63,387 nt of DNA, filler included, from Octopus bimaculoides (GCF_001194135.2; 5 parts of 5 records of this genome joined end to end with filler, not necessarily neighbours in it); one strand, 5' to 3'. Positions 41,743 to 60,895 are shown, counted from the whole stretch's first letter. Translations and numbers: made by a program. Notes: generated by a model from the letters alone, not told the origin.

Positions 41743-41781
<39 letters not shown>

Positions 41782-42299
41782 GCACATGTATGTATTATAT
41801 ATGTATGTATCTATCTGTATATCTATCTAACTATCGATCGATCGATCGATCTTTCTGTCTTTCACATCACGTTCCTACCATTCATTGCACTGTCTTTTAG
41901 TGAATTCAATAAGAAAGAATGTGGGGAAACTCAAATTTATGTTGCGTTTGTATTTGTTTGCTATCAGATCACCATTTGAAATCCTATTCTTGGGTGTATA
42001 CACTTTCCCTTGATTAGATTCGAGTTGGGAGCTCTTTATTTTTGAATTAAAGACGATAGTAATCTTATCCTCTGGAGTACTTGTAAATACAGTCTTAAGA
42101 AAGTTCACGCACCCAGCAATAAAATACCCGATGATGACTGGAAACCAAACCGGGTAAATAGTTAAAAATTAGTTTAATAGTCTAGGAAAATTATAAATTT
42201 TATAAGCAATAAAACATCCCAGAATTAATATACGTTATGTATTTAATTAAAAATATGCATTTAATGAAAAATATAAGAACAAGCAGAAATGCCTCTGCA

Positions 42300-42990
42300 A
42301 ATTATTATTGAGTAGCCTGATGCTTGTGTTTCTTTGAATTAATTAGTACTTTAGATAAGCTATTAGTAACTTCTTTGAAACAAGAAATGTTAATTTTGTC
42401 CTCTTCAAATCTTATGGCTTTCTGAAGGTGGCAATCCTTTGAAATTTTTACTCCAACTCGTGTGTGCCTAATACATGTCCAAATATTCGGTATGCGATTG
42501 AAATCTAGACTCTGACACAGCCAGAGCATAATTTTAATGGATTTGTTTCTTGGTCTATTTTATCATTGAGCAGTTGTTGAAAAATAGCTATGTTTTTCTT
42601 CTTCAGGTAATATATTTTTTACTGGTTGGGAAATAACCTGTTTCTTAAACAGATCTTAGCGATTTCAAAGGAGGAATTGAATGTTTTCATCTTATAAATT
42701 CAGAAAAATCTACAGATGAAAATGTACTCGGTATTAAGATTCCACCTCCTGCATGCTTTACATTTCTGAGACACTACTATAATGCTGAAATCTTGATTGT
42801 TAACTCTGAAATCTTTCTGAAACAAATCTGAATAAGATTTTGGCCAATTTATCACACTTGACTAAATATGCATTTTGTTCGAAATGTTTTTAATGAAAAG
42901 AGGTTTTGTAGTGCAAAACTAGAAGCAAAACCAACTTCTTTCAGTCTTCTTGCAATGGTCCAAATAGGAAGTCTTGTAACTAGTAATAAT
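42300..42990 (-). mobile_element. Highly decayed Tc1 transposase
   Basis: TIARRLKEVGFASS.., ..VKHAGGGIL.. on the minus strand with many frameshifts. Confidence 0.55.
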
Positions 42991-44238
42991 AAACACTTTC
43001 TATATTACATATCTCTGATGAGCTGACAAAGAGCCGGGCACGATATAAGGGACTAAAGCTTTTAAAGTTACTCTAACGTGCTACAGTCAGTAAAATAATA
43101 AAATAATAAAAGAATTAAGAATATTTTATTAAACTTACTACAACCGTGTCNNNNNNNNNNNNNNNNNNNNNNNNNNNNNNNNNNNNNNNNNNNNNNNNNN
43201 NNNNNNNNNNNNNNNNNNNNNNNNNNNNNNNNNNNNNNNNNNNNNNNNNNNNNNNNNNNNNNNNNNNNNNNNNNNNNNNNNNNNNNNNNNNNNNNNNNNN
43301 NNNNNNNNNNNNNNNNNNNNNNNNNNNNNNNNNNNNNNNNNNNNNNNNNNNNNNNNNNNNNNNNNNNNNNNNNNNNNNNNNNNTTGCTGCGGTTCGCTCG
43401 TAGCAATGTTATAGGATTAGATTATTGCATAAATGTGTGATTGATAAAATAAAAGGAAAAAAAGAAGGTGAACAAAGAAAGAGGTAAAAGGCATTTCAAA
43501 TCCAATATATCAGGACATGCTAAAAATAAAAGATCTTTTAAATTTGACGCAATTATTGTACAAGATAATTAAGTAAATATGTAAAAGAAACATAATTATG
43601 ATAAATAATTTAATGAAAAGATCCAGTTGAGTCAAATCAGGATTGCCACAACTTTGATCACCCCCGTTTAATATTTCTTTTCTGCTTTTGCATTTCACGT
43701 AGTTACTTGACCAAAAAGTATCTTTGCGCAATTTTGAGGTTGAAGCAGCCAAGAAAGGGCCCAGTTCCTGGAAATATTTCATGCAAAGTAGTTCGTAGCA
43801 TTGTTCGACTGTTTTAATATCCTGACTATTCTATTCTCCATAAAGCGAGTCTCTGTCTACTGATCTGTACTGAATTTTGTCCAGAAATCAGTCGCGTAAG
43901 TTTCTTTTAAAATCTCTTCCATCAGTTCTTTGCCGATGTATAGCGAGCTGACATTTAAAGCAGTGTAACGGGACATGGACTCCTCTTCACACTATTTGCT
44001 TCCCTTAGTGTGATTTCTTTTTAAGAGGTTTTCGTTTCGTTTTCTATTTGCTTCTGCATTCTCTAGTATTTTGCCACTCAGCGTATTTTCCATCCTTTCT
44101 TCATTGTCGAAAAGCAATTAAATCTCCTTTAAACTCTCTTTAAACTCTACCCCACTCTCATAGTTTTCTCTACCAAATGAATTTGTGATAGATTTTAAGG
44201 AAAACAAACTTTTCCAACTGAACACAAAATATGCCCGT

Positions 44239-44311
44239 GGGCATATGACGTAGTGGTTAAGAGCGCGGGCCACTAACCCCAAGATTCCGAGTTCGATTCC
44301 AGGCAAGGACC

Positions 44312-44367
<56 letters not shown>

Positions 44368-44510
44368 TAACATCGAAAAATACCTTAGGAATGAGAACCC
44401 AGGTTCGAAATTTCCCCAAGACACCTGATGAAGGCTGGAGGGTATATCAGCCGAAACGTTGTGTTAACAACAAACAAGATGAGGACAAATATCCGTCAAT
44501 TGTAAATAAC
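44239..44510 (+). mobile_element. tRNA-headed SINE-like element with internal (TAA)n and hammerhead ribozyme
   Basis: A box TGACGTAGTGG (44246-44256), B box GAGTTCGATTCC (44289-44300), (TAA)n at 44312-44366, then a body containing the HHR. Confidence 0.75.
44420..44465 (+). ncRNA. Minimal type-I hammerhead ribozyme, intact core
   Basis: GACAC / CTGATGA-A / GGCTG-GAGGGTATAT-CAGCC / GAAAC-GTT / GTGTT. Stems I and II pair, stem III is the palindromic ACGT, cleavage triplet GUU. Confidence 0.75.
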
Positions 44511-44593
44511 TTTAAGGTTGAGCATGTCAGTTTGCAAACACGCTGCTGCTGCTGATGACGACGACAACGACAACAACAACAACAACAACAACA

Positions 44594-45262
44594 ATATCCT
44601 CACATCCATATTAACTGACAGAATATACGCTTTCCTTGAGAAGAGAACTATCCTTCCATACGTTAAAAAAGGCTGTAAAAAGAATTCTTATGGATGCAAA
44701 AATCAATTACTCATAAGTAAAATGATTGTAGAGAACTGCCGGAGTAAAAAGGAAAACTCGAGTATGGCATGGATAAACTGCAGGACAGCGTTTAGTAGTG
44801 TCCCACATAATTGGATACTCAAGGCCTTTCAGATATATAAGATCTTAGTTGTCTTCTCCAAATTCTTACAAGGTACCATGGTCAAGTAGAACACACGTCT
44901 CCTTCTAAACCATAGTAATGGGATGAGCCAAACTAACAACATCAACATCAAACGAGGCATCTTTCAAGGTGACTCTCTCTCTCCATTACTCTTTTGCATG
45001 GCACTGATCCCACTCTCATACGAACTAAATAACACCAGGTATGGTTTCAAAGTTCGCAATACGGCAATAAACCGTCTGTTTACTATGGACGATCTGAAAC
45101 TGTTTGCTAGAAATGACGAAGAGCTAGTGGGGCTGCTAACAACTGCTATAGAATTCAGCAATGACATCGGGATGGACTTTGGTCTTAATAAGTGTGCTAA
45201 AGAAACTTTTGTAAGAGGCAAGCTCAAGCAAACAACTTCCATTAAATTAGATACCGACACTA
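44594..45262 (+). mobile_element. R4/Dong-like LINE reverse transcriptase fragment inserted after (AAC)n
   Basis: KGCKKNSYGCKNQLLISK..AFSSVPHNWI..KRGIFQGDSLSPLLFCMAL..TMDDLKLFA..DIGMDFGLNKCA. Confidence 0.9.
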
Positions 45263-45264
45263 CC

Positions 45265-45625
45265 AGAAGCGTGACCCACAAGAGCAACCTTCACAATGGA
45301 CTCGGATAACCGGATCCGTCCTGAATGCGTCAACAGCTGTTCGACAACGCTCCACAATTCAGCAATACCTGAACATGCAGAACAGTTTCATCGCCTTGCA
45401 CACATCTCGGACAGGTCATTCTGACGGCATTTCCGAACCGACAGAGCTCCTCAGTAACACTTGAGGTCAGGGATTTCTAGAAATTATCCATTGGCCCTGA
45501 CCCGGAAATCCTCTGTAAAAGACCAAACAGCTGATCCCTCCCTATGCCCAGAGTTTCCCCAAGAATGTTGTCACCCTTGCCCCTCACTAATCCCCAACAG
45601 AACTTCCACCGACCGCATTGCCCGA
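45265..45625 (-). mobile_element. Tx1/L1-like LINE C-terminal zinc-binding (zf-RVT) fragment
   Basis: ..LCRFGNAVRMTCPRCVQGDETVLHV.. (CxxC..ETxxH). Confidence 0.6.
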
Positions 45626-47151
45626 TCGGTAGAGGGCTATGTACGTAAAGACGAACGAAATGCCGCTAAGAATTTTGCCCGGCTTGCTAATGATTTTGCT
45701 TGTTCACAACAACAAAAGCAACAACAAAAATAACGACTATAAGGATAGTATTAGTAATAAAGAAAGTTTTTACATACGTAATTTCGAATAGATATTGCCA
45801 TATTTTACTTTGATTTTAAAGAATGATAACTAATAATGATTAAAGCCGTACCGAGATAATGGTTTGATCCGTCATGCCAAATTGTTTTCATACGGCAACT
45901 TGTATTGGTATTCAGGCATTCATACCTCCAGGAACTTTCGCTGTAAGTACTGTTTGTCATATTGAACGATACAAGATATGGCTGTTTACACGAATAAGCT
46001 GTTAAAAAAATATATAAAACTGCGTGTTATAGTAAACAGAACTTTAATATTTGCTTACTTAAATGTATTATTACAACGTGGGCACATCTATAATATATAT
46101 ATATATATATATATACATAATTCACGGCCACTAAAATGTGATGAAGGGTGGAGGGAGCAGCAGTTCTAGGTATTGACAAGGGAGGTAATCTACCCACCAC
46201 AAACGAGAAACATTACATTGGCATGCCAATCTCGCATGGAAATTAATGCTCATCAGTAATGCTTCCTCTATCGTGGAAAGTGAAGTTTAATTTATCTTGT
46301 CAGTATATATAGAATCTACCACAGGAATCAGTGGCTGATTCCGCAAAATGGTGATGTGAAAATTATAAAATAATTAAAGTGGCTAATGCCACTCGCCTGC
46401 ATTGGGGATGTTATTTCCCTTGTCAGTAAACAAAACGTGTTTCTGTGGCTAGAGATTCTTCGACTCTTATTTCTAGTAATGCTGGTCACTTTTTAACGAC
46501 GGTGCATTATTTGCTTTTTGGTTTTGAATTGCTTATAGCCACCTGAATAATTTTACACACGCTCATATGTGTGTATATATATANNNNNNNNNNNNNNNNN
46601 NNNNNNNNNNNNNNNNNNNNNNNNNNNNNNNNNNNNNNNNNNNNNNNNNNNNNNNNNNNNNNNNNNNNNNNNNNNNNNNNNNNNNNNNNNNNNNNNNNNN
46701 NNNNNNNNNNNNNNNNNNNNNNNNNNNNNNNNNNNNNNNNNNNNNNNNNNNNNNNNNNNNNNNNNNNNNNNNNNNNNNNNNNNNNNNNNNNNNNNNNNNN
46801 NNNNNNNNNNNNNNNNNNNNNNNNNNNNNNNNNNNNNNNNNNNNNNNNNNNNNNNNNNNNNNNNNNNNNNNNNNNNNNNNNNNNNNNNNNNNNNNNNNNN
46901 NNNNNNNNNNNNNNNNNNNNNNNNNNNNNNNNNNNNNNNNNNNNNNNNNNNNNNNNNNNNNNNNNNNNNNNNNNNNNNNNNNNNNNNNNNNNNNNNNNNN
47001 NNNNNNNNNNNNNNNNNNNNNNNNNNNNNNNNNNNNNNNNNNNNNNNNNNNNNNNNNNNNNNNNNNNNNNNNNNNNNNNNNNNNNNNNNNNNNNNNNNNN
47101 NNNNNNNNNNNNNNNNNNNNNNNNNNNNNNNNNNNNNNNNNNNNNTATATG

Positions 47152-47184
<33 letters not shown>

Positions 47185-48184
47185 TAGCAAACACTCATCC
47201 TTTGGACGATTTAAGTTGGTTTGGTGGTATTTTTTTCACCAAATAATTGAACTACTGAGAAGGTCTATGAGTAGCACGGCAATCTACGTTTCTGATTAAC
47301 TTCGGAACAGAAAGCCAAAGGCTGGTTATTGTGGTGGTCGTTGCACTTTAATGGTGGTAGAACATATAACTTTGCAAGCGATGCAAAGTAGAGCTACTGA
47401 AGTATTTTGGAAGAAGATTACCGATAATGACTACACAATATAATTGTTTTACATATAAGCGAAATTTCTTGTCAGAAACTGCCACATAAATGGTGTAAGA
47501 AAATTGAAGGAAGACGTTGAAGCTTCCTCTCTGCGAGTTTATCTTATTCAACAGCAAAGGGGATCATTTCTTTAGAGAGAAGTATGATTGGTACGTTCAA
47601 AAATGGCAATATAATACCTATTTGAAAATGTAGAGTCAAAGGAATGTATTTGCTCCGTGCTTACAGCGTACGACCACTCTGAAATTGACTTCAGGTATCG
47701 AAAAATAAAGACATGAAGAGTTTGACTTCAGTTCACGAGTACTACTTTGAAACTTTAGCAGTTCGCTGTGAAAAGACATCGCGTTCGAAATTTCATAATG
47801 GATAGGTAAATAAGCATACTCAAAGTGAAACAACGTATTGGTAGGTAAACAAAGGTATCAACAAATAGAAGAGATGAAATGGAACATCACCTTTCAAGTA
47901 ACTCAGAATAGGTAGCGGTAAGCGTGCAGTTCAAATATGGAGATTAAGATTGTTTGATATTGGATATTCATTGCGTACAGTGTTCCTAGTCAATTTAATC
48001 ACCGTCGCAGGTGGACAGTCGAAGTAAATAAAAAGACAAAATCCTTTCACTTCTATAATATTCTCTAACCAAGTAATAATACACAATTACAACATATATA
48101 TAAATAATAAATAAAAGAAATGAGAAAACCACCAAAAATATTCTCTAATGCCAATATACGACCATGCAGATTAAAAAAGTATAG

Positions 48185-48385
48185 AAGACCCTACATACAA
48201 TGAATTAGAGAAAAAACCTGTAGAAACCACCGTTTGTTCCTGTTTGTCCATTTACGTGGGAGTTCTGAACAAAATGTTACAATGCATGACCATCCATGGG
48301 ACATAAGTAATGTGTGTGTAAAGTTTGGGGAAAATCGGTTGAGAATTGTGGAAATGTATGCGTTAGTCAATATACACACACATAC
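48185..48385 (+). mobile_element. Possible Helentron-associated (HINE/DINE-like) non-autonomous repeat
   Basis: AAGTTTGGGGAAAATCGGTTGAG..(CA)n-type 3' portion resembles HINE-like elements; termini not confirmed. Confidence 0.3.
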
Positions 48386-48419
48386 TGTGACTTATATATG
48401 CTAGATATGCATGTGTACG

Positions 48420-48487
<68 letters not shown>

Positions 48488-48494
<7 letters not shown>

Positions 48495-48845
48495 TGCGAT
48501 GGGTAAATTTCGCCATTTTATGAACTTAATTTCGCACACGAGCATTGCTTGTTCTTGATTCTGCCGATTACACAGTTGGGCAAAAAAGTGAAAAACAGCC
48601 CTGTGACGCAATTTTCTCTGCCAGAAATTTGAAAACGACATGCTGTACTGCTTGGCATTCGCACCGGAAGCTCCAATACGGACATTTCAGAGTATTTGGG
48701 TGTCAATCTGAGGACAGTGTAGAGGATTCAGAAAGAGATGGATGATTTTAATGATTATGACGGTACGGCAGCTCGGAAAACTCACTCTGATCGTCCTGAT
48801 AATAAAAGAACTTCTGAATTTGTTGGCGAAATCCAGGCCGTTCCT
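48488..48845 (+). mobile_element. maT-like Tc1/mariner 5' fragment
   Basis: ..EIWKRHAVLLGIRTGSSNTDISEYLGVNLRTV*RIQKE..ARKTHSDRPDNKRTSEFV, similar in style to the N-terminus of the 36289-37479 element. Confidence 0.65.
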
Positions 48846-48859
48846 TTCTGCAAATGTTC

Positions 48860-49185
48860 GACCACAAACAGTGAATAGAGGAAGACTAATTTTATCCGGA
48901 TTTTTATGATGAACCTGAATTGCAGCATTGTACAATTCACTAACGGCAGCTAATTCAACATTACCACCGTATTTTCCATCCCTAATCATGTATGCTTGGT
49001 ATTCCTGCAGTGTATTATTCGGAATAAAAGAATGAAAATACTTCCAATTATTGCATATGTATCGTACGGACTCTTCCCAAAGATTACGGTAATTCCCGTT
49101 GTTTTTGAGTTAGAGTGACACAGCTCTGAACACAAACAGTTACTATCGCCCATGACTTTATTAAAGTGGTGAATTAATAAATCAA
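48860..49185 (-). pseudogene. Decayed OTU-family cysteine protease domain
   Basis: MGDSNCL-(2-nt frameshift)-FRAVSL*LKNNGNYRNLWEESVRYICNNWKYFHSFIPNNTLQEYQAYMIRDGKYGGNVELAAVSELYNAAIQVH. Includes the catalytic-Cys box and the (W/Y)GG..EL motif; no intron. Confidence 0.75.
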
Positions 49186-49588
49186 TGTAATTGTTGAATG
49201 TTTTTCAATAAATTCAGTAAAGGACTTCACTTTCAGTTTAAACTTTAGATGGTTTTGTGAACAGAACGTGACGGAAAATTACAACACCAAAAGGGATAAT
49301 TGATAGCAATTTCCCCTTTAGAAATCTATCTTTCTAGCTTTGAGATAGATGAATGTGTGATTATAATTTTGTAAATGATAAAAACGAAATTAATAAGGTA
49401 CTTCACCTTCAATGTTGACTTGAAAAGAAAAGTGATTCGACTAAGCATTTAGCAAACGATAACTTCTTTATCATTTGTTCATAAATGGAAAAAAGGAATA
49501 CTTCGGTTATTTCCGGATAATTTCGCTTTAGACGTTGTCAAATACTTGTCTATAGATTTGTGAGTGTGTGTATGTGTGTGTTACAAAG

Positions 49589-49654
<66 letters not shown>

Positions 49655-50844
49655 ACACGATGGAGACAGAAAGTGATTGAAAGCGTGCGCGTGTGTATCT
49701 CTGAATGACAACTGTATTAACGTTACTATCCTACTGAGACTCTTTATTTGTCGCTTACACAACTCTGTCCTCTCATTCCTTGATATCAATCACACTCTCT
49801 ATGCCACTTGTTTCCCTTCACATTATCGCTAAGGAAGACGAAAATGACGAACGCAAAATTCTCGATCGAAGACAGCTACATGCCAAACTAAAACTATCGC
49901 TCATTGGTTGATTGAATTGAAAATTAACCAATAAACGTTATTACCACCCGACTATAATATTCTGTGTCTGACAGATATGTTTTCCTAATTATCACATATT
50001 TATATAAATTACTCAATAGTTTTAAAACGCAATTCAAATCCAGATATTTCATGTGAAGGATAACTATGATGGATGTAGAGTAAATATTTAATACGAGATA
50101 ATCTTTACGTTGAAACTAACCGTAATATTCATATTAATTATAATGATAAATATTAATTTCATTTGTAAAAGATCATGTGCTAAGATTATTAACGTCTATT
50201 AACTTTGAATTTCAGTGAGCCTACTTCTCGACCTGCTGGAATTGCATCTCATGGATCTGTTGCTATGGTATTTGTAGCTCTTGCTCTGCCCCAGTCATCT
50301 TATATGTAATGTCAGTTAACGATATATTAGGTGTAACTCTCTTTTAAGGATTGTGTGAACGAAAAGCTATTGTACCTTATATCACTGTCATGAAATAATT
50401 AAGCTTCAAATTTATATAAACAAGGGAAAGGAAATAGTTATTAATTATGAGCTGTTGAACGTAAATTTTAGATTAAAAACCAAAGTGCTTGATTCGACCT
50501 GCTGGTTATAACAGCCAAGTCTTTCTTAAATCACAACTATACACTTTCCTTTTTTTAGGAAAGGTGGCCGTCATTTGAGGGAAATTTAAATGAGATAATA
50601 AAGGTAGGTGTGATTTGAGGGAGAGATTGAAAAATGTACTCTTATTTCCATATTGCCTGAAAGAGATGAGATCAGAATCATTGGAACACTTTTAATCATA
50701 GGTTTGCCTGATCAACGTTGACTTGGTATAAAATAGCAATGAAATTATCGATATTAAGTGCATACGTGTGCCATTTCAATTCTGTGAATTCATTTCCTTT
50801 ATTTAACCTACACGAAGAAGAACATAATTTACTTAAAACCTTAC

Positions 50845-51003
50845 GACATGCTTTTGGTTTCGACCAAACGGCGGTATCCAGACAATTTGATTTTCTAATG
50901 TCATCTCCACGCAAATTCGCCAAACAACTGTATTTCACAGACCACTCATCTATCCAAGTGATCACTGAGGAGTTTAACGGGAGTGGTACACCACAGTCAA
51001 TGT
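50845..51003 (-). CDS. Exon 3 (Sushi/CCP module) of the secreted PAN-EGF-Sushi gene
   Basis: catag|AC..TGT C|gtaagg; 159 nt, phase 1-1; (D)IDCGVPLPL..VKYSCLANLRG..NCLDTAVWSKPKAC shows four Cys plus the conserved Trp. Confidence 0.85.
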
Positions 51004-51606
51004 CTATGTTATTTTTTAGATGTAAAAAAGAGAAGAAGAAACGCATTTGTCAAATATTAATAGTATAGCAAGATGGGAAAAAACAAACAAAGAATGAAAC
51101 TTTAACAATTTGGTGTTATAATTCCCAAACTAGGAGCGAAACGGCATATTGGACTNNNNNNNNNNNNNNNNNNNNNNNNNNNNNNNNNNNNNNNNNNNNN
51201 NNNNNNNNNNNNNNNNNNNNNNNNNNNNNNNNNNNNNNNNNNNNNNNNNNNNNNNNNNNNNNNAATACTATACCATGTCAGTCATTATTGATTTCTCTAA
51301 TTAGAAGAGTAATTTTTGAATTAGAGGTATATATCAAGAAAAAATCCCCTCAATATATTACTGGTATTCATTCTTTCTGACCTACTGAATAATATAATCC
51401 CCGTGCCATTTGTACGTCTAACTGCTACTGTTATTCTTCAGGCATCTCTAACGCTTTTATACCAAATAATATTCATTCTTTTTACTCTACAGAGACCACT
51501 TCTTATACGGGGGCGAGTAGAGACAAATGGATCGATATGCAGAATATTACAGATACTTATTTTTTTGACATCGAATTCTAAGAGAAGTTGACTTCAATGA
51601 TGCTTG

Positions 51607-52560
51607 TACGGGGGTGGACTGAAAATTTCATAGGCTCACTATGGATGAGTGATGCTAGAGTTGTGAAATCTTGCAAGCATTAATTTCAACACATTTTGTT
51701 AATAACAGCACAATTTCTTACCAGAAAAACTGATATCTCACTGTTCAAAGAAACTTAAGTGTAACTAGTAGCAACATCTCTTGAAAACGGGCAATATCCG
51801 GCATAGTGGTGTTCTCAATTACCTGCAGAAAAGAGGTTTAGCTCTCACAGATATTCATGCTGACATGGTTGCTATGGGAGAGTCTTGAAGATACCTCAAG
51901 GTGTGGACGTCCTGCAACTGCGTCCGCCGAGCAAAACAGTGATTATGTTCACCACATTGTGATGGAGGACAAACAATTGTCTATAAATCAAATAGCAAAT
52001 GCTATTAGCATATCTCGTGAGGGAGTTCAGATTATTTTGCACAATAAACTTGGCGTGATGAAGGTTTCTGCTCGGTGGGCGCCAAGTCGTATTACACCTA
52101 ATCAAAAACACACCGGTTCGATTATAGCACGGGGAAATCTGACATTGTTTGAGGCATATCCAGCTAGATTTCTTGAATAGTTGGATGAAGATTGGGGTTA
52201 TAGCTTTGAGCCAGAGACAAAGAGACAATCTATGCAGTAGAAACACTCTTCGTCACCCGCTCCAAAGAAAGCCAAGGTCATTTCATCTGCAGTGAAAGTG
52301 ATGGCCGCACTTTTTTTGGGATGCAAAAGCATTGTGTTTATTGACTATCTTCAAAAGTGCCACACCATCAATGAAGAGTTCTATCACAACTTGCTGAGGC
52401 AATTGCGAAAGACTATCAAGACCAAACACGAAGGAAAACTGACGAAGATATCTTTTCATCAGGGCAATGCTCCAGCACAACAGTCCTTGGTTTCAATGGC
52501 TGCTGTGTGAAACTGTGGCTTTGAACAAGTTGAGCAACCTCCCTTTTCTCCCATATTAAT
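51607..52560 (+). mobile_element. Decayed mariner transposase
   Basis: ..HNKLGVMKVSARWAP.., ..VMAALFLGCKSIVFIDYLQKCHTINEEFY..FHQGNAPA..PPFSP. Confidence 0.8.
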
Positions 52561-52635
52561 GAGTTTTCTGTTTGTTAATAAAAGACTGTTGTAGAACAGG
52601 ATAGTTAGAATAATTTTAGAATATGACTAATTGTA

Positions 52636-52896
52636 CGAGGGGTTGTTGAAAAGTTCCTGACTTTAAGGGTATCTCGAAAGGCCCGATTGGAGGCCCAAAC
52701 TTCCGAGTGCTTACAAAAACCTGCTTAAAAAACCTAAAGGATCCCTGTAAGAAAAACACCTGTGCTTAAAAAACCTGAAGGAGCGCTGCGATAAATGTGT
52801 GAATCTTAGAGGGGCATATGACGAATAAAAGCATAATCAACCGATCCTCCTGTATTTTCTTTTATCCAAAGTCAGAAACTTTTCAGCACCTCCTCG
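52636..52896. mobile_element. Mariner-type MITE with TA TSD
   Basis: TA+CGAGGGGTTGTTGAAAAGTTCCTGACTTT ... AAAGTCAGAAACTTTTCAGCACCTCCTCG+TA. Confidence 0.75.
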
Positions 52897-54862
52897 TACG
52901 CTCTGCATTTAGCCTTGAGCTCAGACGTCATTGAAGCTGAATTTACTTTTTATCCTTCTAGGGCAGATAATGCAAGTACCAATGATATATACTGCAGCAT
53001 ATTCGTTCAACCAAATTAGTCTAACACATATTTGTGAGTACAAGGTCGTATATCGAAAGAAGGGATTAGTCGATTGAACCAAAATCTGTCAATATTCCTG
53101 CTACATAACTACAGTGAACGAATATTAAGTTGACATAGTTTTAAAACATATAGTTCGGTCGCCGACTAAATAACCACCGTATTATGACAGTGAGTATAAT
53201 GTCTCTGTTTCGGAAAGCTACTTGACACTAATTCAACAGCTTGTAGTCTTTGCCGTCAAAATTATGATTTCAAATCTTCTCATCGAGAGTTTTATTGTAA
53301 CAAATTTGTGTAATCCAATAGAATTCACCCAGTCTACAAGAATAACCTTTTATCCAAAGCAAGAGAAAAGTCCATGAGTTAGCGGGGAAGAATAAAATAG
53401 TGATCTATATAATTCTCAGTATTAAGTTTCGGCCACAATGTTCGGAGTTCAAATCCTGCAAACATTACTGTGAATAACACTTGTTAGTTTCTGTTGTCTA
53501 AATGATCGTAAGAAAATTATAGTTACTGGAGTGAGGAAGAGATGGAAGAATCGGATGGAATTGTTAATGTTCTTGTTGTTGCTAAATATTCAAATAAGCT
53601 GTGACAAAGTAGATTTATGATGAAAGCCGTTCCTGCAACAACTATCTAAAATTTTTGTATATCTAGGACTGCTTGGAAAACACTTTCTCAAGGGGGTCAG
53701 ATACGTGATTCGAAAACAACTATTTGTCTGTTATTTCTTACAGGTTGAACGAATACACAGAAGTTACTTTGGCAAGAAAATGTAAAAATCTCACCTTTCG
53801 TTTTTAAGAGACAAGCGAATCACTGTAAGTATCCAATGAATCTCGTTCGTAAAATACGTTTTTTGTGTCAAATATTCGCTGTTAAATACCTATTCTTGAA
53901 AGTTATTTCGTATTAGAATGACATATTATTGATAAACAGACTTTTCTCAGAATTAGGAAAAAGAAATCTCCAGAACAATTCGAATATGCTTTTTGTCAAG
54001 TGGATATTGTACATTTCACTATTTAAGCACCGTTCAGATGTTCTGTCAGAAGGTCAAGTTATATTTTCTTCTGTGAATAGTGCAAACAGCATAGGATGGC
54101 CAGTTTATATACTTCTGAATCTACGGTACATTTAAAAAAGAAGGCAGTCAATTTGGTTATTGAACAGGGCGGATAAAACCTACGCCACTGAATCAACACC
54201 AATTGTAAATGATATTTGCACATAATGGTGAGCAGTACAATCGTATCAAAAGCTATACGGTGAAGTGAACTTCATTCCCTCACAACTATTTAACCTATCT
54301 TTAAATCTATGAGTAGACAAGATTATCAGACTATGTTTTAAGATACAGCATGAAATATATCTCATATTAAACGAATTAGTACAATCCACATTACTCAAAT
54401 GAGTATTCTCTGGAATTCTGAATACGCGTTTTAGCAAATTTTAATATTTTGCATTAACTACACAATATTAAGCATAGTTGTACATTAAATACATTAACTT
54501 TACCTAGAAATCTCTAACTTCCACGCCAAGAATCTGATAGGGCTTTTACTTCCTTCACAGAATAATGATTTCACCCTTCAACATTCAAAAAGGCCATATA
54601 CGGCCAAAATATTCTGCCTCTTTTAAGTTCAAATTAGCCAGATCCAAAATCTCACACTTATTTTACAATGTTATAGTAACAATAAATTATCGCATGACTG
54701 AGATCTTAAAGCCACAAGATAATGCAGGAGTAATTCAAGACAATGTTGCTTTTGATAGAGTACTGTGAATGCTAAAGGGTTAAGCAAAAATGATTTTCTA
54801 CATAACGAGAATATAAGACAAAATATTTTAAAATCAACGTTAACATACAAAATGTAACTTAC

Positions 54863-54950
54863 CCAATTTTAAGCAGGAGTAGGTATCTTTTCCTGGTAAA
54901 CACATTTCCTCACTCTTACATGGACGATTGAAGCAGTTTCCAGCAATACG
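54863..54950 (-). CDS. Exon 2 (4-Cys truncated EGF-like module) of the PAN-EGF-Sushi gene
   Basis: ccattatcag|CGT..TTG G|gtaagt; 88 nt, phase 0-1; RIAGNCFNRPCKSEEMCLPGKDTYSCLKL. Bridges the phases of exons 1 and 3 exactly. Confidence 0.85.
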
Positions 54951-55283
54951 CTGATAATGGACACAAGAATAACAGTTTTGTTTTACAAGAAGGATTAAGT
55001 AATACGGCAGCTTCTACTTTTATAGACAATGATTAGAATATCACCTATTCAAAGCTTTCTTCAAAGCCTCGCAATAATAAATGCACCAGAGAAGGAAAAC
55101 AACTGAGAAGCTTTCTCTAAATGATTATTTATGTGAAACCTAGTCAACGAAATGAAGGCAGCATTTTAAAAATATATAAAAGAGATTCGTAATAAATCTC
55201 TATATTCATAGAGATCTCTCTGAGAGATTTAGAAATATATTGCTATTTTCGAAAATCAGTGAATATATTTCACTTGAAATATA

Positions 55284-55421
55284 TATGTTTTCAAAGGCGG
55301 ATAAGCACCGACGACTAGCAAGCCATGCTACTCCCGACTGATGATGAGTAATGACTCTGAAACTCGTCTCTGGGTGCTAGCTTTGCTGGGTGGAGGTGCT
55401 TATCTCCACTTTGAAAACATA
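55284..55421 (+). ncRNA. 138-nt hairpin with an apical minimal hammerhead motif (55333-55374)
   Basis: Outer inverted repeat TATGTTTTCAAAGGCGGATAAGCACC / GGTGCTTATCTCCACTTTGAAAACATA; HHR CCCGA / CTGATGA / T-GAGT-AATG-ACTC-T / GAAAC-TC-GTC / TCTGGG. Confidence 0.65.
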
Positions 55422-55549
55422 AGGACACAGGAAATGTGTCAAGTCCATCAGGAAACGGTATTTTCTAGGGCTAAATAACAGAAGAATTCTTCCCTTTTAT
55501 GGGGCGGTCTCATTAAGTTGATAACAAACTATCACTTCATCAATATTCT

Positions 55550-57830
55550 AGTTAAGATAAATCTTAGCAACTGCATTGTAGAAACTGAGAGGTGCATAAT
55601 GGAGAGCATCTAGCAATACAGAAATAACGAATCTCATGAACCAGCATACCAAAATCACACACAATATCCTTGTCTGCTGGATCACAGATGATTCTATGTA
55701 GACATGTTCTGGTTGATCCGATGCAGTTTGGCCATGTCTATATTGGCACATTCAGGAAATTGCATCGCTACTTGTCGGACAGTCGGAAGGAGTACTCCGG
55801 TCTTCTTTGAACCAGCCATTGACAAACTAAATTTTCATACAAAAAGGTACCCAAGTCACTCACTAGCACTAAAGAGAGGAACATTCTGAGGAAAAACCTT
55901 CATTCTTCTGAAGAAATATGGCTGTCTCACACCGGTTGAAGCATAAACGGCTAGTAGGCCTAGGCCATCACCTTTGATACTGTTCATGTCCAGGATCACC
56001 ATCTTACTTCCTGCATCCAAGTAGATGATCTATATCGTGAGATCCAGACTCTTCCGAAACAACAGAGTGTCCCAATTCCAGTTGACATGGAAATAAGTTG
56101 ATCTTGTATCTACCGAAAATGAATATGACGTCTTGTCGATCAAAAACTTTTTTGATAATAACCACCAAATGGATATCTAGTGATATGAGATCACTGGGCA
56201 GGTTGCACCGATTCCAAGATCATCCTAGGCCACATGCATTTACACTGCCTATTCTGAGTTCGACCATGTTCGACATGGGGTAGTGAAAAAGAATCAGTTA
56301 CCTTATTCCTATGGAGGAACACTTTTTGTCTCCCACCACGCTTGGAAACTTGAATGCCATCAAGCGCTCATAATCTTAGCGAATCAGGCAATGAAGTCGG
56401 TAGAAGAGCCATGTTAGCGTTCTATGGATGGTTATTGTGTGCGAGTGGGTGTGTCAAAGGTACGGCGTTCTCATTGAAAATCAGGGCGTTGATGAAAATC
56501 AGTCGGCTGGTTTGGTCTGGAGAACTTTCGGGCTGGACACACACATACATATATATGAACATATACATCTATCTATATATCTGTCTGTCTGTCTTGTATT
56601 CAGGTAGAAACCTTGCTGTTGCTTTTGTTGCTGTCTGGTGTGAGGAAGCCATAGAGGTTGGTGAGTTGGTTATTTCGTTTGCTGTTGTTACTTCCATTGT
56701 TGTTGTTGTTGTTATGTTGGAGTTGCTGACAGCAGCGTGGTTTTCTCTTTTGTTTACTTGGGGTAGAAAGCCCTTAAATGATTTGTTTGGCCACAAATGT
56801 GACATCCCAGCTTTTTAACCTCTACTACTACAAATAATCTTGCACCTGCAAGGAACTCTATTAGATTTGGAATCTCATGTGCAATTGCGAAATCTGCATG
56901 CAACAAGAGTTCCATCCCTCTGCCATACCAGTTTTCTTTTTAAAATCTGTATTTGTAGAATTTTAATTCCGTCCTCTATGCCGTACAACACGACCGCTGT
57001 CTGCAAGATGTCCACTATTGGTCGCACCTCCGCTACCTTCACTTTAACGACCATCCGACCGAGGTACGTGAGAATCATATACAATACCTCTGTTTTCAGG
57101 GTTGTCATGGCATTTTCTATGGCCAGTTCTTCGGTTGAAAATCGCACCTCTACCGTGCCAAAGCTTTAATCACGGATGACATAGCATTTTTTGTTCCATA
57201 CAGGTCTCAAGCATTTTTCGACCTGGACTTTTGTAGTTCTTTCTATTTTACTTGTTTTCAAAGATGTACATCTGTATATAATTGTCATCACGTTTCCTCT
57301 TGCCCCTCCTCTAGCGTGTTTAAGTGGACTGTCGTGCCAGTTCTGGTTAGATACATATTTTGCTCTAGCCAACTCTTCTTTTGATAATTCCATCTCCTCC
57401 GTTCTCTGACAAATCTGAGCGAACCCACTATGTGTTTGCTAAGAAAAAGCAACTGTTGTCTGTGCTTTGCTAACTTTTTCTTTCTTTGACGTGGTGGTGG
57501 TTGTGGTGGTGATAAAATCTGCTTCACCTTCCTGCTTCACCTTCCTGCTTATAGCTGTTGTTGTTGCTCTGGCAAGTCGTCGTGGTAGCAGTGGTGGTAG
57601 TAGTGCTGCTGTTCTCCTCCACTCCCTCCTTCACGACCCCGTCGGTGCTGATGGTGGTGATGATGCTGTTATTGCTGCTGCTTCTCTTCCTCTCTTCAAC
57701 CACATTAGGTAGCGAAAGGAACAACATCTCACAGAGGCTGTTGCAAAAAGCGTCGGCACCCTCGATTTGAGAAGCCATGTTGCAAATTTTCTTCAAAATA
57801 TAGAATTGTGAGTTGTTAAAAGTCAAAATT
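55550..57830 (-). mobile_element. Tx1/L1-clade LINE 5' part: ORF1 (gag-like, zinc knuckle) plus start of ORF2 (APE)
   Basis: ORF1 ..SFGTVEVRFSTEELAIE.. and CHICGQTNHLRAFY (56763-56804); ORF2 MSNMVELRIGSVNACGL from 56276. Many stops. Confidence 0.8.
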
Positions 57831-57936
57831 CTCCCTTAAATGGCGAATTTTTTACCACCCCAGCTGGCCCNNNNNNNNNNNNNNNNNNNNNNNNNNNNNN
57901 NNNNNNNNNNNNNNNNNNNNNNNNNNNNNNNNNNNN

Positions 57937-57995
57937 TAAAACAAGTTTGAACAAAAATTAACAGACCTCCGAACACGAGGCCGACAGCTCCAGAC

Positions 57996-58066
<71 letters not shown>

Positions 58067-58494
58067 GATCTCAAATTTTAAAACATAATTTTCTTACGGT
58101 TTCTTAAACATTCTCTAGAACAACATTATGTACAAATCCAAATATATGGTACCCTAGGCATAACACCTACATGAACTTCTAACTTGTTGTCTCTTGAGGT
58201 CTCTGGGTGAGACTTGGATCCAACTTGTACAAATGCAAAACAAAAGTCAAACATAAAATAATAATAATAATAATAATAAATGCATAACAAAATACAAATA
58301 CAAAACAAAAACACCAAGACTTACAAGTATATATAACATACAGAAAATTGCACTACTAGGTACTGCACACATCCTGCGCTAAGCACTTTCAATACAGTAA
58401 CCATAAGAGTATCACAGCAAGCCACAACACATACCCAAGGCACACAGAGCTGCGCTGGGTAGTGAAGTGAAAGCACGCTATAAAGATAAAACTA

Positions 58495-58576
<82 letters not shown>

Positions 58577-58992
58577 GGGATATGCCAATACACACATCTG
58601 GGATATGCCAATACACTAATCTGGGATATGCCAATACACACAGATAGAGAAATTAAGGCAAATAGACCAGATATAGTTGTCAAAGATTATGAAGAAAAAA
58701 ATGCTTTCTAATTGATGTATCAATACCAGCAGATGACAACGTTTCTCTAAAAGAAATGGAAAAACTTTCAAAATACAAAGACCTAGAAATAGAGATAACT
58801 CGAATGTGGAATCTAAAAACAGAAACAATTCCTATCATAGTAGGTGCCTTAGGTATAATAAAAAATACTCAGACAAATACATAACAAAAACACCAGGACT
58901 TACAAATATATATAACATACAGAAAATTGCACTACTGGGTACTGCACACATTCTACGCAAAACACTTTCAATACAGTAAACATAAGAGCATC
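57937..58992 (+). mobile_element. Stacked 5'-truncated R4/Dong-like LINE 3' ends separated by (AAT)n tracts
   Basis: [66 protein letters not shown]; the 3' end is repeated at 58310-58495. Confidence 0.85.
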
Positions 58993-59768
58993 NNNNNNNN
59001 NNNNNNNNNNNNNNNNNNNNNNNNNNNNNNNNNNNNNNNNNNNNNNNNNNNNNNNNNNNNNNNNNNNNNNNNNNNNNNNNNNNNNNNNNNNNNNNNNNNN
59101 NNNNNNNNNNNNNNNNNNNNNNNNNNNNNNNNNNNNNNNNNNNNNNNNNNNNNNNNNNNNNNNNNNNNNNNNNNNNNNNNNNNNNNNNNNNNNNNNNNNN
59201 NNNNNNNNNNNNNNNNNNNNNNNNNNNNNNNNNNNNNNNNNNNNNNNNNNNNNNNNNNNNNNNNNNNNNNNNNNNNNNNNNNNNNNNNNNNNNNNNNNNN
59301 NNNNNNNNNNNNNNNNNNNNNNNNNNNNNNNNNNNNNNNNNNNNNNNNNNNNNNNNNNNNNNNNNNNNNNNNNNNNNNNNNNNNNNNNNNNNNNNNNNNN
59401 NNNNNNNNNNNNNNNNNNNNNNNNNNNNNNNNNNNNNNNNNNNNNNNNNNNNNNNNNNNNNNNNNNNNNNNNNNNNNNNNNNNNNNNNNNNNNNNNNNNN
59501 NNNNNNNNNNNNNNNNNNNNNNNNNNNNNNNNNNNNNNNNNNNNNNNNNNNNNNNNNNNNNNNNNNNNNNNNNNNNNNNNNNNNNNNNNNNNNNNNNNNN
59601 NNNNNNNNNNNNNNNNNNNNNNNNNNNNNNNNNNNNNNNNNNNNNNNNNNNNNNNNNNNNNNNNNNNNNNNNNNNNNNNNNNNNNNNNNNNNNNNNNNNN
59701 NNNNNNNNNNNNNNNNNNNNNNNNNNNNNNNNNNNNNNNNNNNNNNNNNNNNNNNNNNNNNNNNNNNN

Positions 59769-60112
59769 CAGAAGTAGTGGGGGAGCATCATAGCCATGTG
59801 TTGAGAGGAGTTCTTTGGGGTTTGAATAATTCACCTTTGGAAACATGGGTGTTTTGCTCAACATCCTTAAACAAACCTTATTCAGGGACCTTTTGAGCGG
59901 GATGGGCTACCCGACCTGAAAAAAATTCTAGCTGGGCCCCACCTGAGAGTTCATGCTCTGTTTATCTTGATATGACATCACCATGTCACGCACATATGGT
60001 TGTGATGCATGTGCCTGGTGTACCCTTATCAGACGGGTAGTCATGATGGGTATAGTGGGCTTGGTATATTTTACCCCAGTGTCACTTTGATGGCATGCAC
60101 TGCTCTCTCACT
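59769..60112. repeat. Interspersed repeat abutting (AAT)n, class and orientation uncertain
   Basis: GC-richer block between a gap and the (AAT/AAC)n tract; no diagnostic protein motif. Confidence 0.4.
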
Positions 60113-60113
60113 C

Positions 60114-60203
<90 letters not shown>

Positions 60204-60219
60204 AATAATAATAATAATA

Positions 60220-60250
<31 letters not shown>
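60113..60250. repeat. (AAT)n-(AAC)n-(AAT)n compound microsatellite in intron 1
   Basis: Directly visible; it produces the spurious poly-Leu tail of ORF 60071-60685. Confidence 0.95.
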
Positions 60251-60355
60251 GAAGAAGAATGCTATAAAATGATTTGCGGATTTTGAATGTATCATCACCA
60301 AAATTGAAAGGACACGTAAAGACAAAACACTAATAAAGTAATTTTTCACACTGAC

Positions 60356-60658
60356 CGGATTCCAGGTTTCGATTAAACTCGATACATAGTTGGTATCCTT
60401 TTGAAGCAATTTTTTCCAACGTTGGTGAAGATTACACTCACTTTTCTGGCCACAGAAACTGAATCCTATACATTGTTGTCTATAAAAACAAAGCATGGCA
60501 CATTGTGTAATGTTGGAGCTATTTAACTGCGCAAATATACCGTGCAGTATACGCCCTTCATGATAAATCCCGTCACATTTGGTATAATTTTTTGAGTAAA
60601 CTAATAAGCCGTTATAATATAACAGTAAGAGTAGACACATCGATAGTGCTGTATTCAT
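60356..60658 (-). CDS. Exon 1 (signal peptide + PAN/Apple domain) of a secreted PAN-EGF-Sushi protein
   Basis: ATG at 60658: MNTALSMCLLLLLYYNGLLVYS-KNYTKCDG..SNITQCAMLCFYRQQCIGFSFCGQKSECNLH..WNP|gtcagt (phase 0). The C-x3-C-x5-C-x-GF..C-x-L pattern is PAN-like. Confidence 0.85.
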
Positions 60659-60895
60659 GATGATCGAAGAAATAATGTAAAGCAACGTTAAGGTTGATGG
60701 ATATCTATTCTATGTTCAGTTGTTGGTGAAAAGAAGACGCTATTCATATGAAGAGACAGAACAAGTGATTTATATATATATATATATATATATATNNNNN
60801 NNNNNNNNNNNNNNNNNNNNNNNNNNNNNNNNNNNNNNNTTAATTAATTAANNNNNNNNNNNNNNNNNNNNNNNNNNNNNNNNNNNNNNNNNNNN

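Follow-up and report, generated by a model that had tools for sequence, protein, structure and literature searches.

A 63,387-nucleotide (nt) stretch of octopus DNA, referred to here at its full length as the window, carries on its minus strand a gene whose predicted product begins with a signal peptide, a PAN/apple module, a truncated EGF-like module with four cysteines and one divergent CCP/Sushi module. Our analysis showed that this gene is an ordinary further member of an octopod family that is annotated and uncharacterised. Sequence comparison identified LOC106871881 of O. bimaculoides and LOC115218571 of O. sinensis as its orthologues, which makes the window gene that of a third species of Octopus. 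The gene has eight exons, of which the window shows those at the 5' end, namely exons 1-4 and, of exon 5, the final 12 nt. The original prediction, a hidden gene of three exons, therefore needed amending: the orthologue has eight exons, and the orthologues and a paralogue are already annotated, as uncharacterised genes, in O. bimaculoides and O. sinensis.

Gene structure and orthology

The three exons first proposed were confirmed on the minus strand with their canonical splice sites and matching phases. Joined, they encode 183 amino acids (aa), with exon end phases of 0, 1 and 1. A fourth exon and the end of a fifth were also readable, and the features of the locus are as follows.

60658..60356, minus strand: exon 1 (E1), 303 nt, ending in phase 0, with the ATG at 60658-60656 and the donor GTCAGT
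60658..60593, minus strand: predicted signal peptide (aa 1-22), within exon 1
Exon 1, minus strand: predicted PAN/apple module (about aa 28-101)
54951..60355, minus strand: intron 1, 5405 nt, GT..AG, with gaps at 57871-57936 and 58993-59768, interspersed repeats and (AAT)n microsatellites
54950..54863, minus strand: exon 2 (E2), 88 nt, phase 0 to 1, acceptor ..TTATCAG, donor GTAAGT, encoding the four-cysteine truncated EGF-like module
51004..54862, minus strand: intron 2, 3859 nt, with a gap at 51156-51263 and a decayed mariner transposon on the plus strand
51003..50845, minus strand: exon 3 (E3), 159 nt, phase 1 to 1, acceptor ..AACATAG, donor GTAAGG, encoding one putative divergent CCP/Sushi module
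45999..50844, minus strand: intron 3, 4846 nt, with a gap at 46584-47145 and about 3.4 kb that has no counterpart in O. bimaculoides
45998..45852, minus strand: exon 4 (E4), 147 nt, phase 1 to 1, acceptor tttttttaacag, donor GTACGG, encoding PYSCKQPYLVSFNMTNSTYSESSWRYECLNTNTSCRMKTIWHDGSNHYL
43151..45851, minus strand: intron 4 and the unread bulk of exon 5, with a gap at 43151-43383 that covers the acceptor of exon 5 and about 125 nt of the exon
43150..43139, minus strand: last 12 nt of exon 5 (E5), GACACGGTTGTA, encoding ..RHGC and one further base, followed by the donor GTAAGT
41743..43138, minus strand: first part of intron 5, up to the edge of the piece at 41743

A search of 1.84 billion representative proteins yielded 35 relatives. 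The 183-aa spliced protein matched P0001 at E=1e-62 and P0002 at E=2e-40, the latter over residues 2-180 and thus across both exon junctions. The close relatives were named by a profile search and a cluster look-up: isoform X1 of LOC106871881 (XP_014774122.1; UniProt A0A0L8IDR0, "Apple domain-containing protein"; 412 aa, eight exons), for which an isoform X2 is also annotated, its O. bimaculoides paralogue LOC106871895, and LOC115218571 and LOC118765760 of O. sinensis. A word-index protein search with the 183-aa protein gave no match, and neither did exact look-ups of the open reading frames (ORFs) at exons 1 and 3 of the window and of the two isoform-X2 proteins, nor a search of Rfam at gathering thresholds.

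At the genomic level, we compared the window with the loci of LOC106871881 (L003), LOC115218571 (L001) and LOC118765760 (L002). The whole piece that carries the gene, introns included, was collinear with L003 and with L001. Twelve collinear blocks of 72-90% identity to L003 extended over 41786-60795, with the same exon order and strand, and the noncoding substitution divergence from O. bimaculoides was 0.132 (7160 sites), with a similar value for O. sinensis. Since collinearity was maintained at approximately 13% noncoding divergence, the window represents the orthologue of this locus from a third species of Octopus. The lengths of E1-E4 (303, 88, 159 and 147 nt) and their donor and acceptor motifs matched those of LOC106871881, and exon 1 was orthologous to O. 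bimaculoides E1 (L003 10034-10336), which has the same donor. For E2-E4, the two orthologues and the O. sinensis paralogue agreed with the window in lengths, intron positions, phases and splice motifs.

The likeness to LOC106871881 covers the intron positions, phases and splice motifs of E1-E5, the order of modules and every cysteine. Identity to the window was approximately 75% over E1-E4 and 60-75% for the protein encoded by E1-E3, and the E4 products differed by one residue. The O. bimaculoides gene differs in having an upstream ATG (MRLISSFSSVIM...) that adds 11 residues; the corresponding position in the window is not ATG, no in-frame ATG was found upstream of the exon 1 start, and the paralogues begin at the same Met as the window exon 1. 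Exon 3 of the O. bimaculoides gene contains a further, internal donor (TGGATAG|GTAAGT); use of this site yields isoform X2, in which half of the CCP module is missing. At this position (50940-50955) the window has TGGATAGATGAGT, which indicates that the window gene cannot make isoform X2. Introns 1-3 differ between the two loci by kilobases of repeats.

The O. sinensis orthologue LOC115218571 (XP_029644321.2, a 260-aa model) shares the collinear locus and the E2-E4 boundaries with the window; however, its model begins inside exon 2, its intron 2 is only about 0.7 kb long and acidic repeats are present in its tail. The paralogues LOC106871895 and LOC118765760 follow the same eight-exon plan, with the same start Met, a signal peptide and the PAN/four-cysteine/CCP head, although they are only 43-48% identical to the window protein and lie in the opposite orientation. 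In O. sinensis, the paralogue is situated on the same chromosome as the orthologue, approximately 48 kb away.

Exon 3 ends in phase 1, and at least one further exon had been expected to follow it. This expectation was borne out by a tblastn search, which located exon 4 at 45998..45852 with 98% identity to residues 160-208 of P0001. The mini-exon at 50327-50340 that had been put forward as the end of the protein falls in intron 3 and was aligned to intron 3 of O. bimaculoides. The alternative offered at that time, that the next exon lay in an assembly gap, was right for exon 5, although this exon is in a different gap (43151-43383). The visible 12 nt and the donor of exon 5 were the same as the 3' end of O. 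bimaculoides E5 (L003 33423-33558): the window sequence 41786-43150 was aligned to L003 34993-33547, and the alignment halted at 43150, corresponding to L003 33547. Further upstream in the gene, 49975-51155 was aligned to L003 23866-22592 and 45647-46100 to L003 24784-24344. The piece edge at 41743 corresponds to approximately L003 35000, upstream of O. bimaculoides E6 at L003 36606, which places exons 6-8 beyond the piece. A weak tblastn match of 42517..42455 to exon 6 (E about 1) was dropped as a chance hit; the segment aligns to intron 5 of O. bimaculoides. For annotation, the gene model is thus corrected to at least five exons in the piece and eight in all, with one exon hidden by an assembly gap and three off the scaffold, and a third species is added to a small, unstudied octopod family of secreted apple-domain proteins.

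The gaps at 51156-51263, 57871-57936 and 58993-59768 are all intronic and leave the exons and splice sites untouched. Both flanks of the gap at 51156-51263 were collinear with L003, where they lie about 34 nt apart. Continuity within intron 1 of the window was uncheckable because this intron is filled with repeats and the O. bimaculoides intron 1 carries its own 2.8-kb gap. The order and orientation of E1 and E2 matched those in chromosome-scale assemblies, and protein alignments crossed the E1/E2 junction ungapped. The difference in identity to P0001 between exon 1 (66%) and exon 4 (98%) had raised the idea of a chimeric model or of alternative 5' exon cassettes; this was rejected, as the piece, introns included, is collinear with a single O. 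bimaculoides gene at about 13% divergence.

Modules of the predicted protein

The order of modules in the predicted protein is a signal peptide, a PAN/apple module, a four-cysteine EGF-like linker, one divergent CCP/Sushi module and then cysteine-rich phase-1 exons. The signal peptide called in the original prediction agrees with the hydrophobic N-terminus, which is the sole strongly hydrophobic stretch in the 183 aa. Signal peptidase sites typically have small residues at positions -3 and -1, and a plausible cleavage follows VYS. In the full-length orthologue, the only hydrophobic segment is likewise at the N-terminus, and the C-terminal tail is acidic and rich in Ser/Thr. As there is no second hydrophobic segment and the tail is acidic, the product is expected to be secreted and soluble. 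All four predicted N-glycosylation sequons (NYT, NSS, NIT and NSS) were present in the E1-E3 protein.

The PAN-like module had been recognised from its cysteine pattern, and both profile and structure comparisons now support a predicted apple fold. Pfam PAN_1 (PF00024) scored 21.5 bits with the whole protein and 23.2 bits with exon 1 alone, marginally over the cut-off of 21.4; the score of the orthologues was 24.7. The core cysteines C53, C57, C63 and C75 were invariant in 20 relatives. An AlphaFold model of the E1-E3 protein, built on a 20-sequence alignment, had a mean predicted local distance difference test (pLDDT) score of 84.8, exceeding 90 over residues 31-130, and a predicted template modelling (TM) score of 0.67. 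A Foldseek search of the PDB with this model was led by the apple domains of factor XI and prekallikrein, Sarcocystis SML-2, AMA1, the plasminogen PAN domain and the HGF N domain; the PAN matches had a probability of 1.0 and a root-mean-square deviation of 1.3-2.8 A over 68-75 residues. Over residues ~30-100, the predicted structure superposes on these vertebrate and apicomplexan PAN domains (factor XI, prekallikrein, plasminogen N-terminal, HGF N and SML-2); in contrast, sequence identity to them is only 11-23%, they have neither the four-cysteine nor the CCP partner, and they occur in unrelated protein contexts.

Exon 2 encodes the pattern C-x4-C-x5-C-x8-C, with the four cysteines C107, C112, C118 and C127 in place of the six of an EGF module. 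Pfam EGF (PF00008) scored 15.2 bits, below its cut-off of 21.5, and covered only positions 1-22 of the 32 in the profile. The same four cysteines, described earlier as the first four of an EGF module, were invariant in all 20 aligned relatives, many of which also share the linker motif W-x(n)-[LI]-AG-x-C. Because the four cysteines recur in 20/20 relatives, comparison of the sequences identifies the truncated EGF as a conserved family feature and not as an artefact of a missed exon.

The product of exon 3 has the pattern C-x22-C-x13-C-x5-W-x5-C, in which C134, C157, C171 and W177 were invariant among the aligned relatives and P137 and C183 were nearly so. Pfam Sushi (PF00084) matched 14 of the 20 aligned relatives. 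A profile of the window module and its relatives matched CR1 at 1.6e-157, as well as CR2, factor H and DAF; this profile is dominated by canonical relatives, to which the window module is tied by full-length alignments (P0017, P0028, P0030 and P0034). The 53-aa module modelled alone by AlphaFold had a pLDDT of 85.1, and its six best Foldseek matches in the PDB were all CCP modules (CR2, CD46, MASP-1 and SPICE), with TM scores of 0.57-0.68 and probabilities of 0.80-0.97. Two results count against the assignment: Pfam Sushi gave no match to the window module even at E-values up to 10, and the Foldseek E-values with the 53-aa model were weak (0.27-0.7). The earlier call of a complete CCP module therefore found support in the relatives, the profile search and, more tentatively, the predicted fold and not in Pfam Sushi on the window sequence alone, and we accept exon 3 as a probable divergent CCP module. 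As in the CCP modules of complement regulators and MASP/C1s, it combines four cysteines with a Trp and a Pro and is encoded by a single phase-1 exon; however, the octopus module is short (53 aa) and lacks the G-[YF] after the second cysteine.

Exon 4 encodes a cysteine-rich module with three N-glycosylation sequons. By eye this module is CCP-like, and it was considered as a second CCP. An hhalign comparison with the CCP alignment gave a probability of 1.3% and E=0.041, which was not significant; the aligned region falls in the expected register of Cys2, Cys3 and the Trp.

The relatives also included gastropod proteins with the PAN/four-cysteine/CCP combination. The 'aggrecan core protein' of Patella vulgata (P0028) and SNE40_016261 of Patella caerulea (P0022) share the head with its invariant cysteines and tryptophan, although they are only 20-25% identical to the window protein and have canonical CCP modules that Pfam Sushi recognises. 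The C-terminal parts of the gastropod relatives differ and consist of C-type lectin, SRCR or further CCP modules or of mucin-like tails. Among the distant relatives, two of which are these Patella proteins, the same head is joined to C-type lectin, SRCR or extra CCP modules.

Evolutionary rates and possible function

We estimated the ratio of nonsynonymous to synonymous divergence (dN/dS) between the window and O. bimaculoides by the pairwise Nei-Gojobori method. Each region contains few sites, so that positive selection is unproven by the following values.

E1-E4 overall: dN/dS 0.86
Signal peptide: dN/dS 0.14
PAN N-terminal half: dN/dS 0.31
PAN C-terminal half: dN/dS 0.98 (dN 0.42)
Four-cysteine module: dN/dS 1.16
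CCP: dN/dS 1.81

In the C-terminal half of the PAN module, nonsynonymous differences amounted to 0.32 per site, more than twice the noncoding value of 0.132 (Fisher P=3.5e-6). In exon 4, a single nucleotide of 147 separated the window from O. bimaculoides and synonymous changes were absent, a difference far under the noncoding rate (P=4e-8). Against O. sinensis, dN/dS was near 1 for the four-cysteine and CCP modules and about 0.5 for exon 4. All 14 mature cysteines of E1-E3 were conserved, and approximately 700 coding nt contained no frame-shifting indel, where about 8.5 were expected from the 86 such events in the 7160 aligned noncoding sites. Judged from these comparisons, the front modules appear to evolve at a roughly neutral rate or faster (dN/dS roughly 1 to 1.8) while the frame, cysteines and splice sites are kept, a pattern that speaks for a functional protein whose surface is changing fast and against a pseudogene.

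With the paralogues as outgroup, 18 changes in the PAN C-terminal half (60356-60470, codons 64-101) were assigned to the window lineage and 8 to O. bimaculoides, and 29 were ambiguous. Compensating frameshifts were considered as a source of the divergence of this half and were rejected: the two BLAST gaps here, which are the only ones placed in coding sequence, are 3 nt each, lie 3 nt apart and are in-frame. Exon 4 differed from that of O. sinensis at 10 nt, and the introns flanking it were about 13% apart from those of O. bimaculoides.

We propose, as the most probable reading, that the product would be an N-glycosylated, disulfide-stabilised extracellular binding protein in which a fairly rigid recognition head for a glycan or protein ligand is built from the PAN, four-cysteine and CCP modules. 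The surface of the head would change at the neutral rate or faster on an unchanging scaffold, as might be expected if the ligand itself were changing; candidates for such a ligand would be the surface of a pathogen or parasite, a gamete or some other partner specific to the species. The well-conserved exon 4 would then encode a constant part of the protein. We infer this soluble recognition role from the evolutionary pattern and by analogy with other PAN and CCP modules, which are known to bind carbohydrates and proteins, and the attachment of the same head to C-type lectin or SRCR modules in distant relatives would fit it. The earlier suggestion of an extracellular recognition, immune or gland-secreted protein would likewise be compatible with the architecture and the fast evolution. 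A fast-changing head on a fixed cysteine scaffold is a pattern typical of immune, reproductive or venom proteins. It is a more ambitious and, in our view, unlikely proposition that the PAN/four-cysteine/CCP head is an undescribed conserved lophotrochozoan recognition unit and that diversifying selection acts on a two-gene octopod family built on it, whose products would be soluble factors in immunity or parasite recognition, or species-specific ones in reproduction. The family is a reasonable candidate for expression and binding studies, and does not open a long-standing question.

Several observations weigh against a functional recognition protein at this locus. Apart from the last 12 nt of exon 5, exons 5-8 are outside the readable sequence of the window, and the gene may not be intact in this species. 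The gene model is a prediction from the sequence, and the related proteins are themselves computational ("PREDICTED") models. Searches of the literature for the locus names, octopus apple-domain proteins and cephalopod PAN/Sushi proteins returned nothing on function. We were unable to identify an exon 1 in the 10 kb of ungapped sequence upstream of O. sinensis LOC115218571 (L001 1-10000); this orthologue may have lost or relocated its first exon, and the family may be decaying in some lineages. In addition, dN/dS values near 1 would also fit relaxed constraint.

A functional secreted protein with a structural role, in mucus, an egg coat or the extracellular matrix, or in mineral or calcium binding through its acidic tail, has a small chance of being the better description, in which case the fast evolution would reflect low constraint on a matrix protein. 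The C-terminal tail of the orthologues is acidic, rich in Ser/Thr and partly repetitive, sequons are numerous, and matrix proteins commonly contain PAN, EGF and CCP modules. In contrast, the protein is of small size and carries each module only once; its divergence is not diffuse but concentrated in the PAN C-terminal half, above the noncoding rate; and distant relatives pair the same head with C-type lectin and SRCR modules, all of which speaks against a structural role.

That the gene is real in its relatives while the window copy drifts without function, under relaxed constraint or as an early pseudogene, is distinctly less probable. The overall dN/dS against O. bimaculoides, the invisibility of exons 5-8 in the window and the truncated O. 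sinensis model would be compatible with drift; however, the visible coding sequence of about 700 nt has neither stops nor the predicted frame-shifting indels, all scaffold cysteines and the six visible splice boundaries are kept, and purifying selection is evident on the signal peptide and exon 4. The idea that the exons are chance ORFs with chance GT-AG sites, for which only their small sizes and the AT-rich, repeat-rich setting could speak, is refuted for practical purposes by the matches to independent octopus proteins (E=1e-62 and 2e-40), the orthologous, collinear locus with the exon structure of its orthologue, and the confident predicted folds.

Transposons, repeats and flanking sequence

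The introns had been described as filled with transposable elements, which holds for the mariner remnant in intron 2 and the interspersed repeats in intron 1. The mariner remnant spans approximately 51857-52510 on the plus strand, where Pfam Transposase_1 matched the ORF 52292-52510 at E=2e-8. About 3.1 kb around it (about 51070-54226) is present in O. bimaculoides and absent from O. sinensis. In intron 1, the segments 58067-58279, 58294-58992 and 59769-60259 each had several non-collinear matches in L001, L002 and L003 at 83-96% identity; on this sequence evidence they are interspersed repeats, bordered by long (AAT)n arrays.

Broken reverse-transcriptase ORFs (RVT_1 at E=1e-6 and 0.01) were found on the plus strand of intron 4 at approximately 44518-45309, in what looks like a decayed retroelement. 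The part of intron 3 without an O. bimaculoides counterpart, about 3.4 kb within 46100-49975, holds a 100-aa minus-strand ORF (48687-48989). Its motif GGNVELAAVSELY is reminiscent of OTU proteases, but Pfam gave no match to this ORF. On the 5' side of the gene, the 137 nt upstream of the start codon (60659-60795) are well conserved with O. bimaculoides, and a (TA)n run lies at the edge of the piece.

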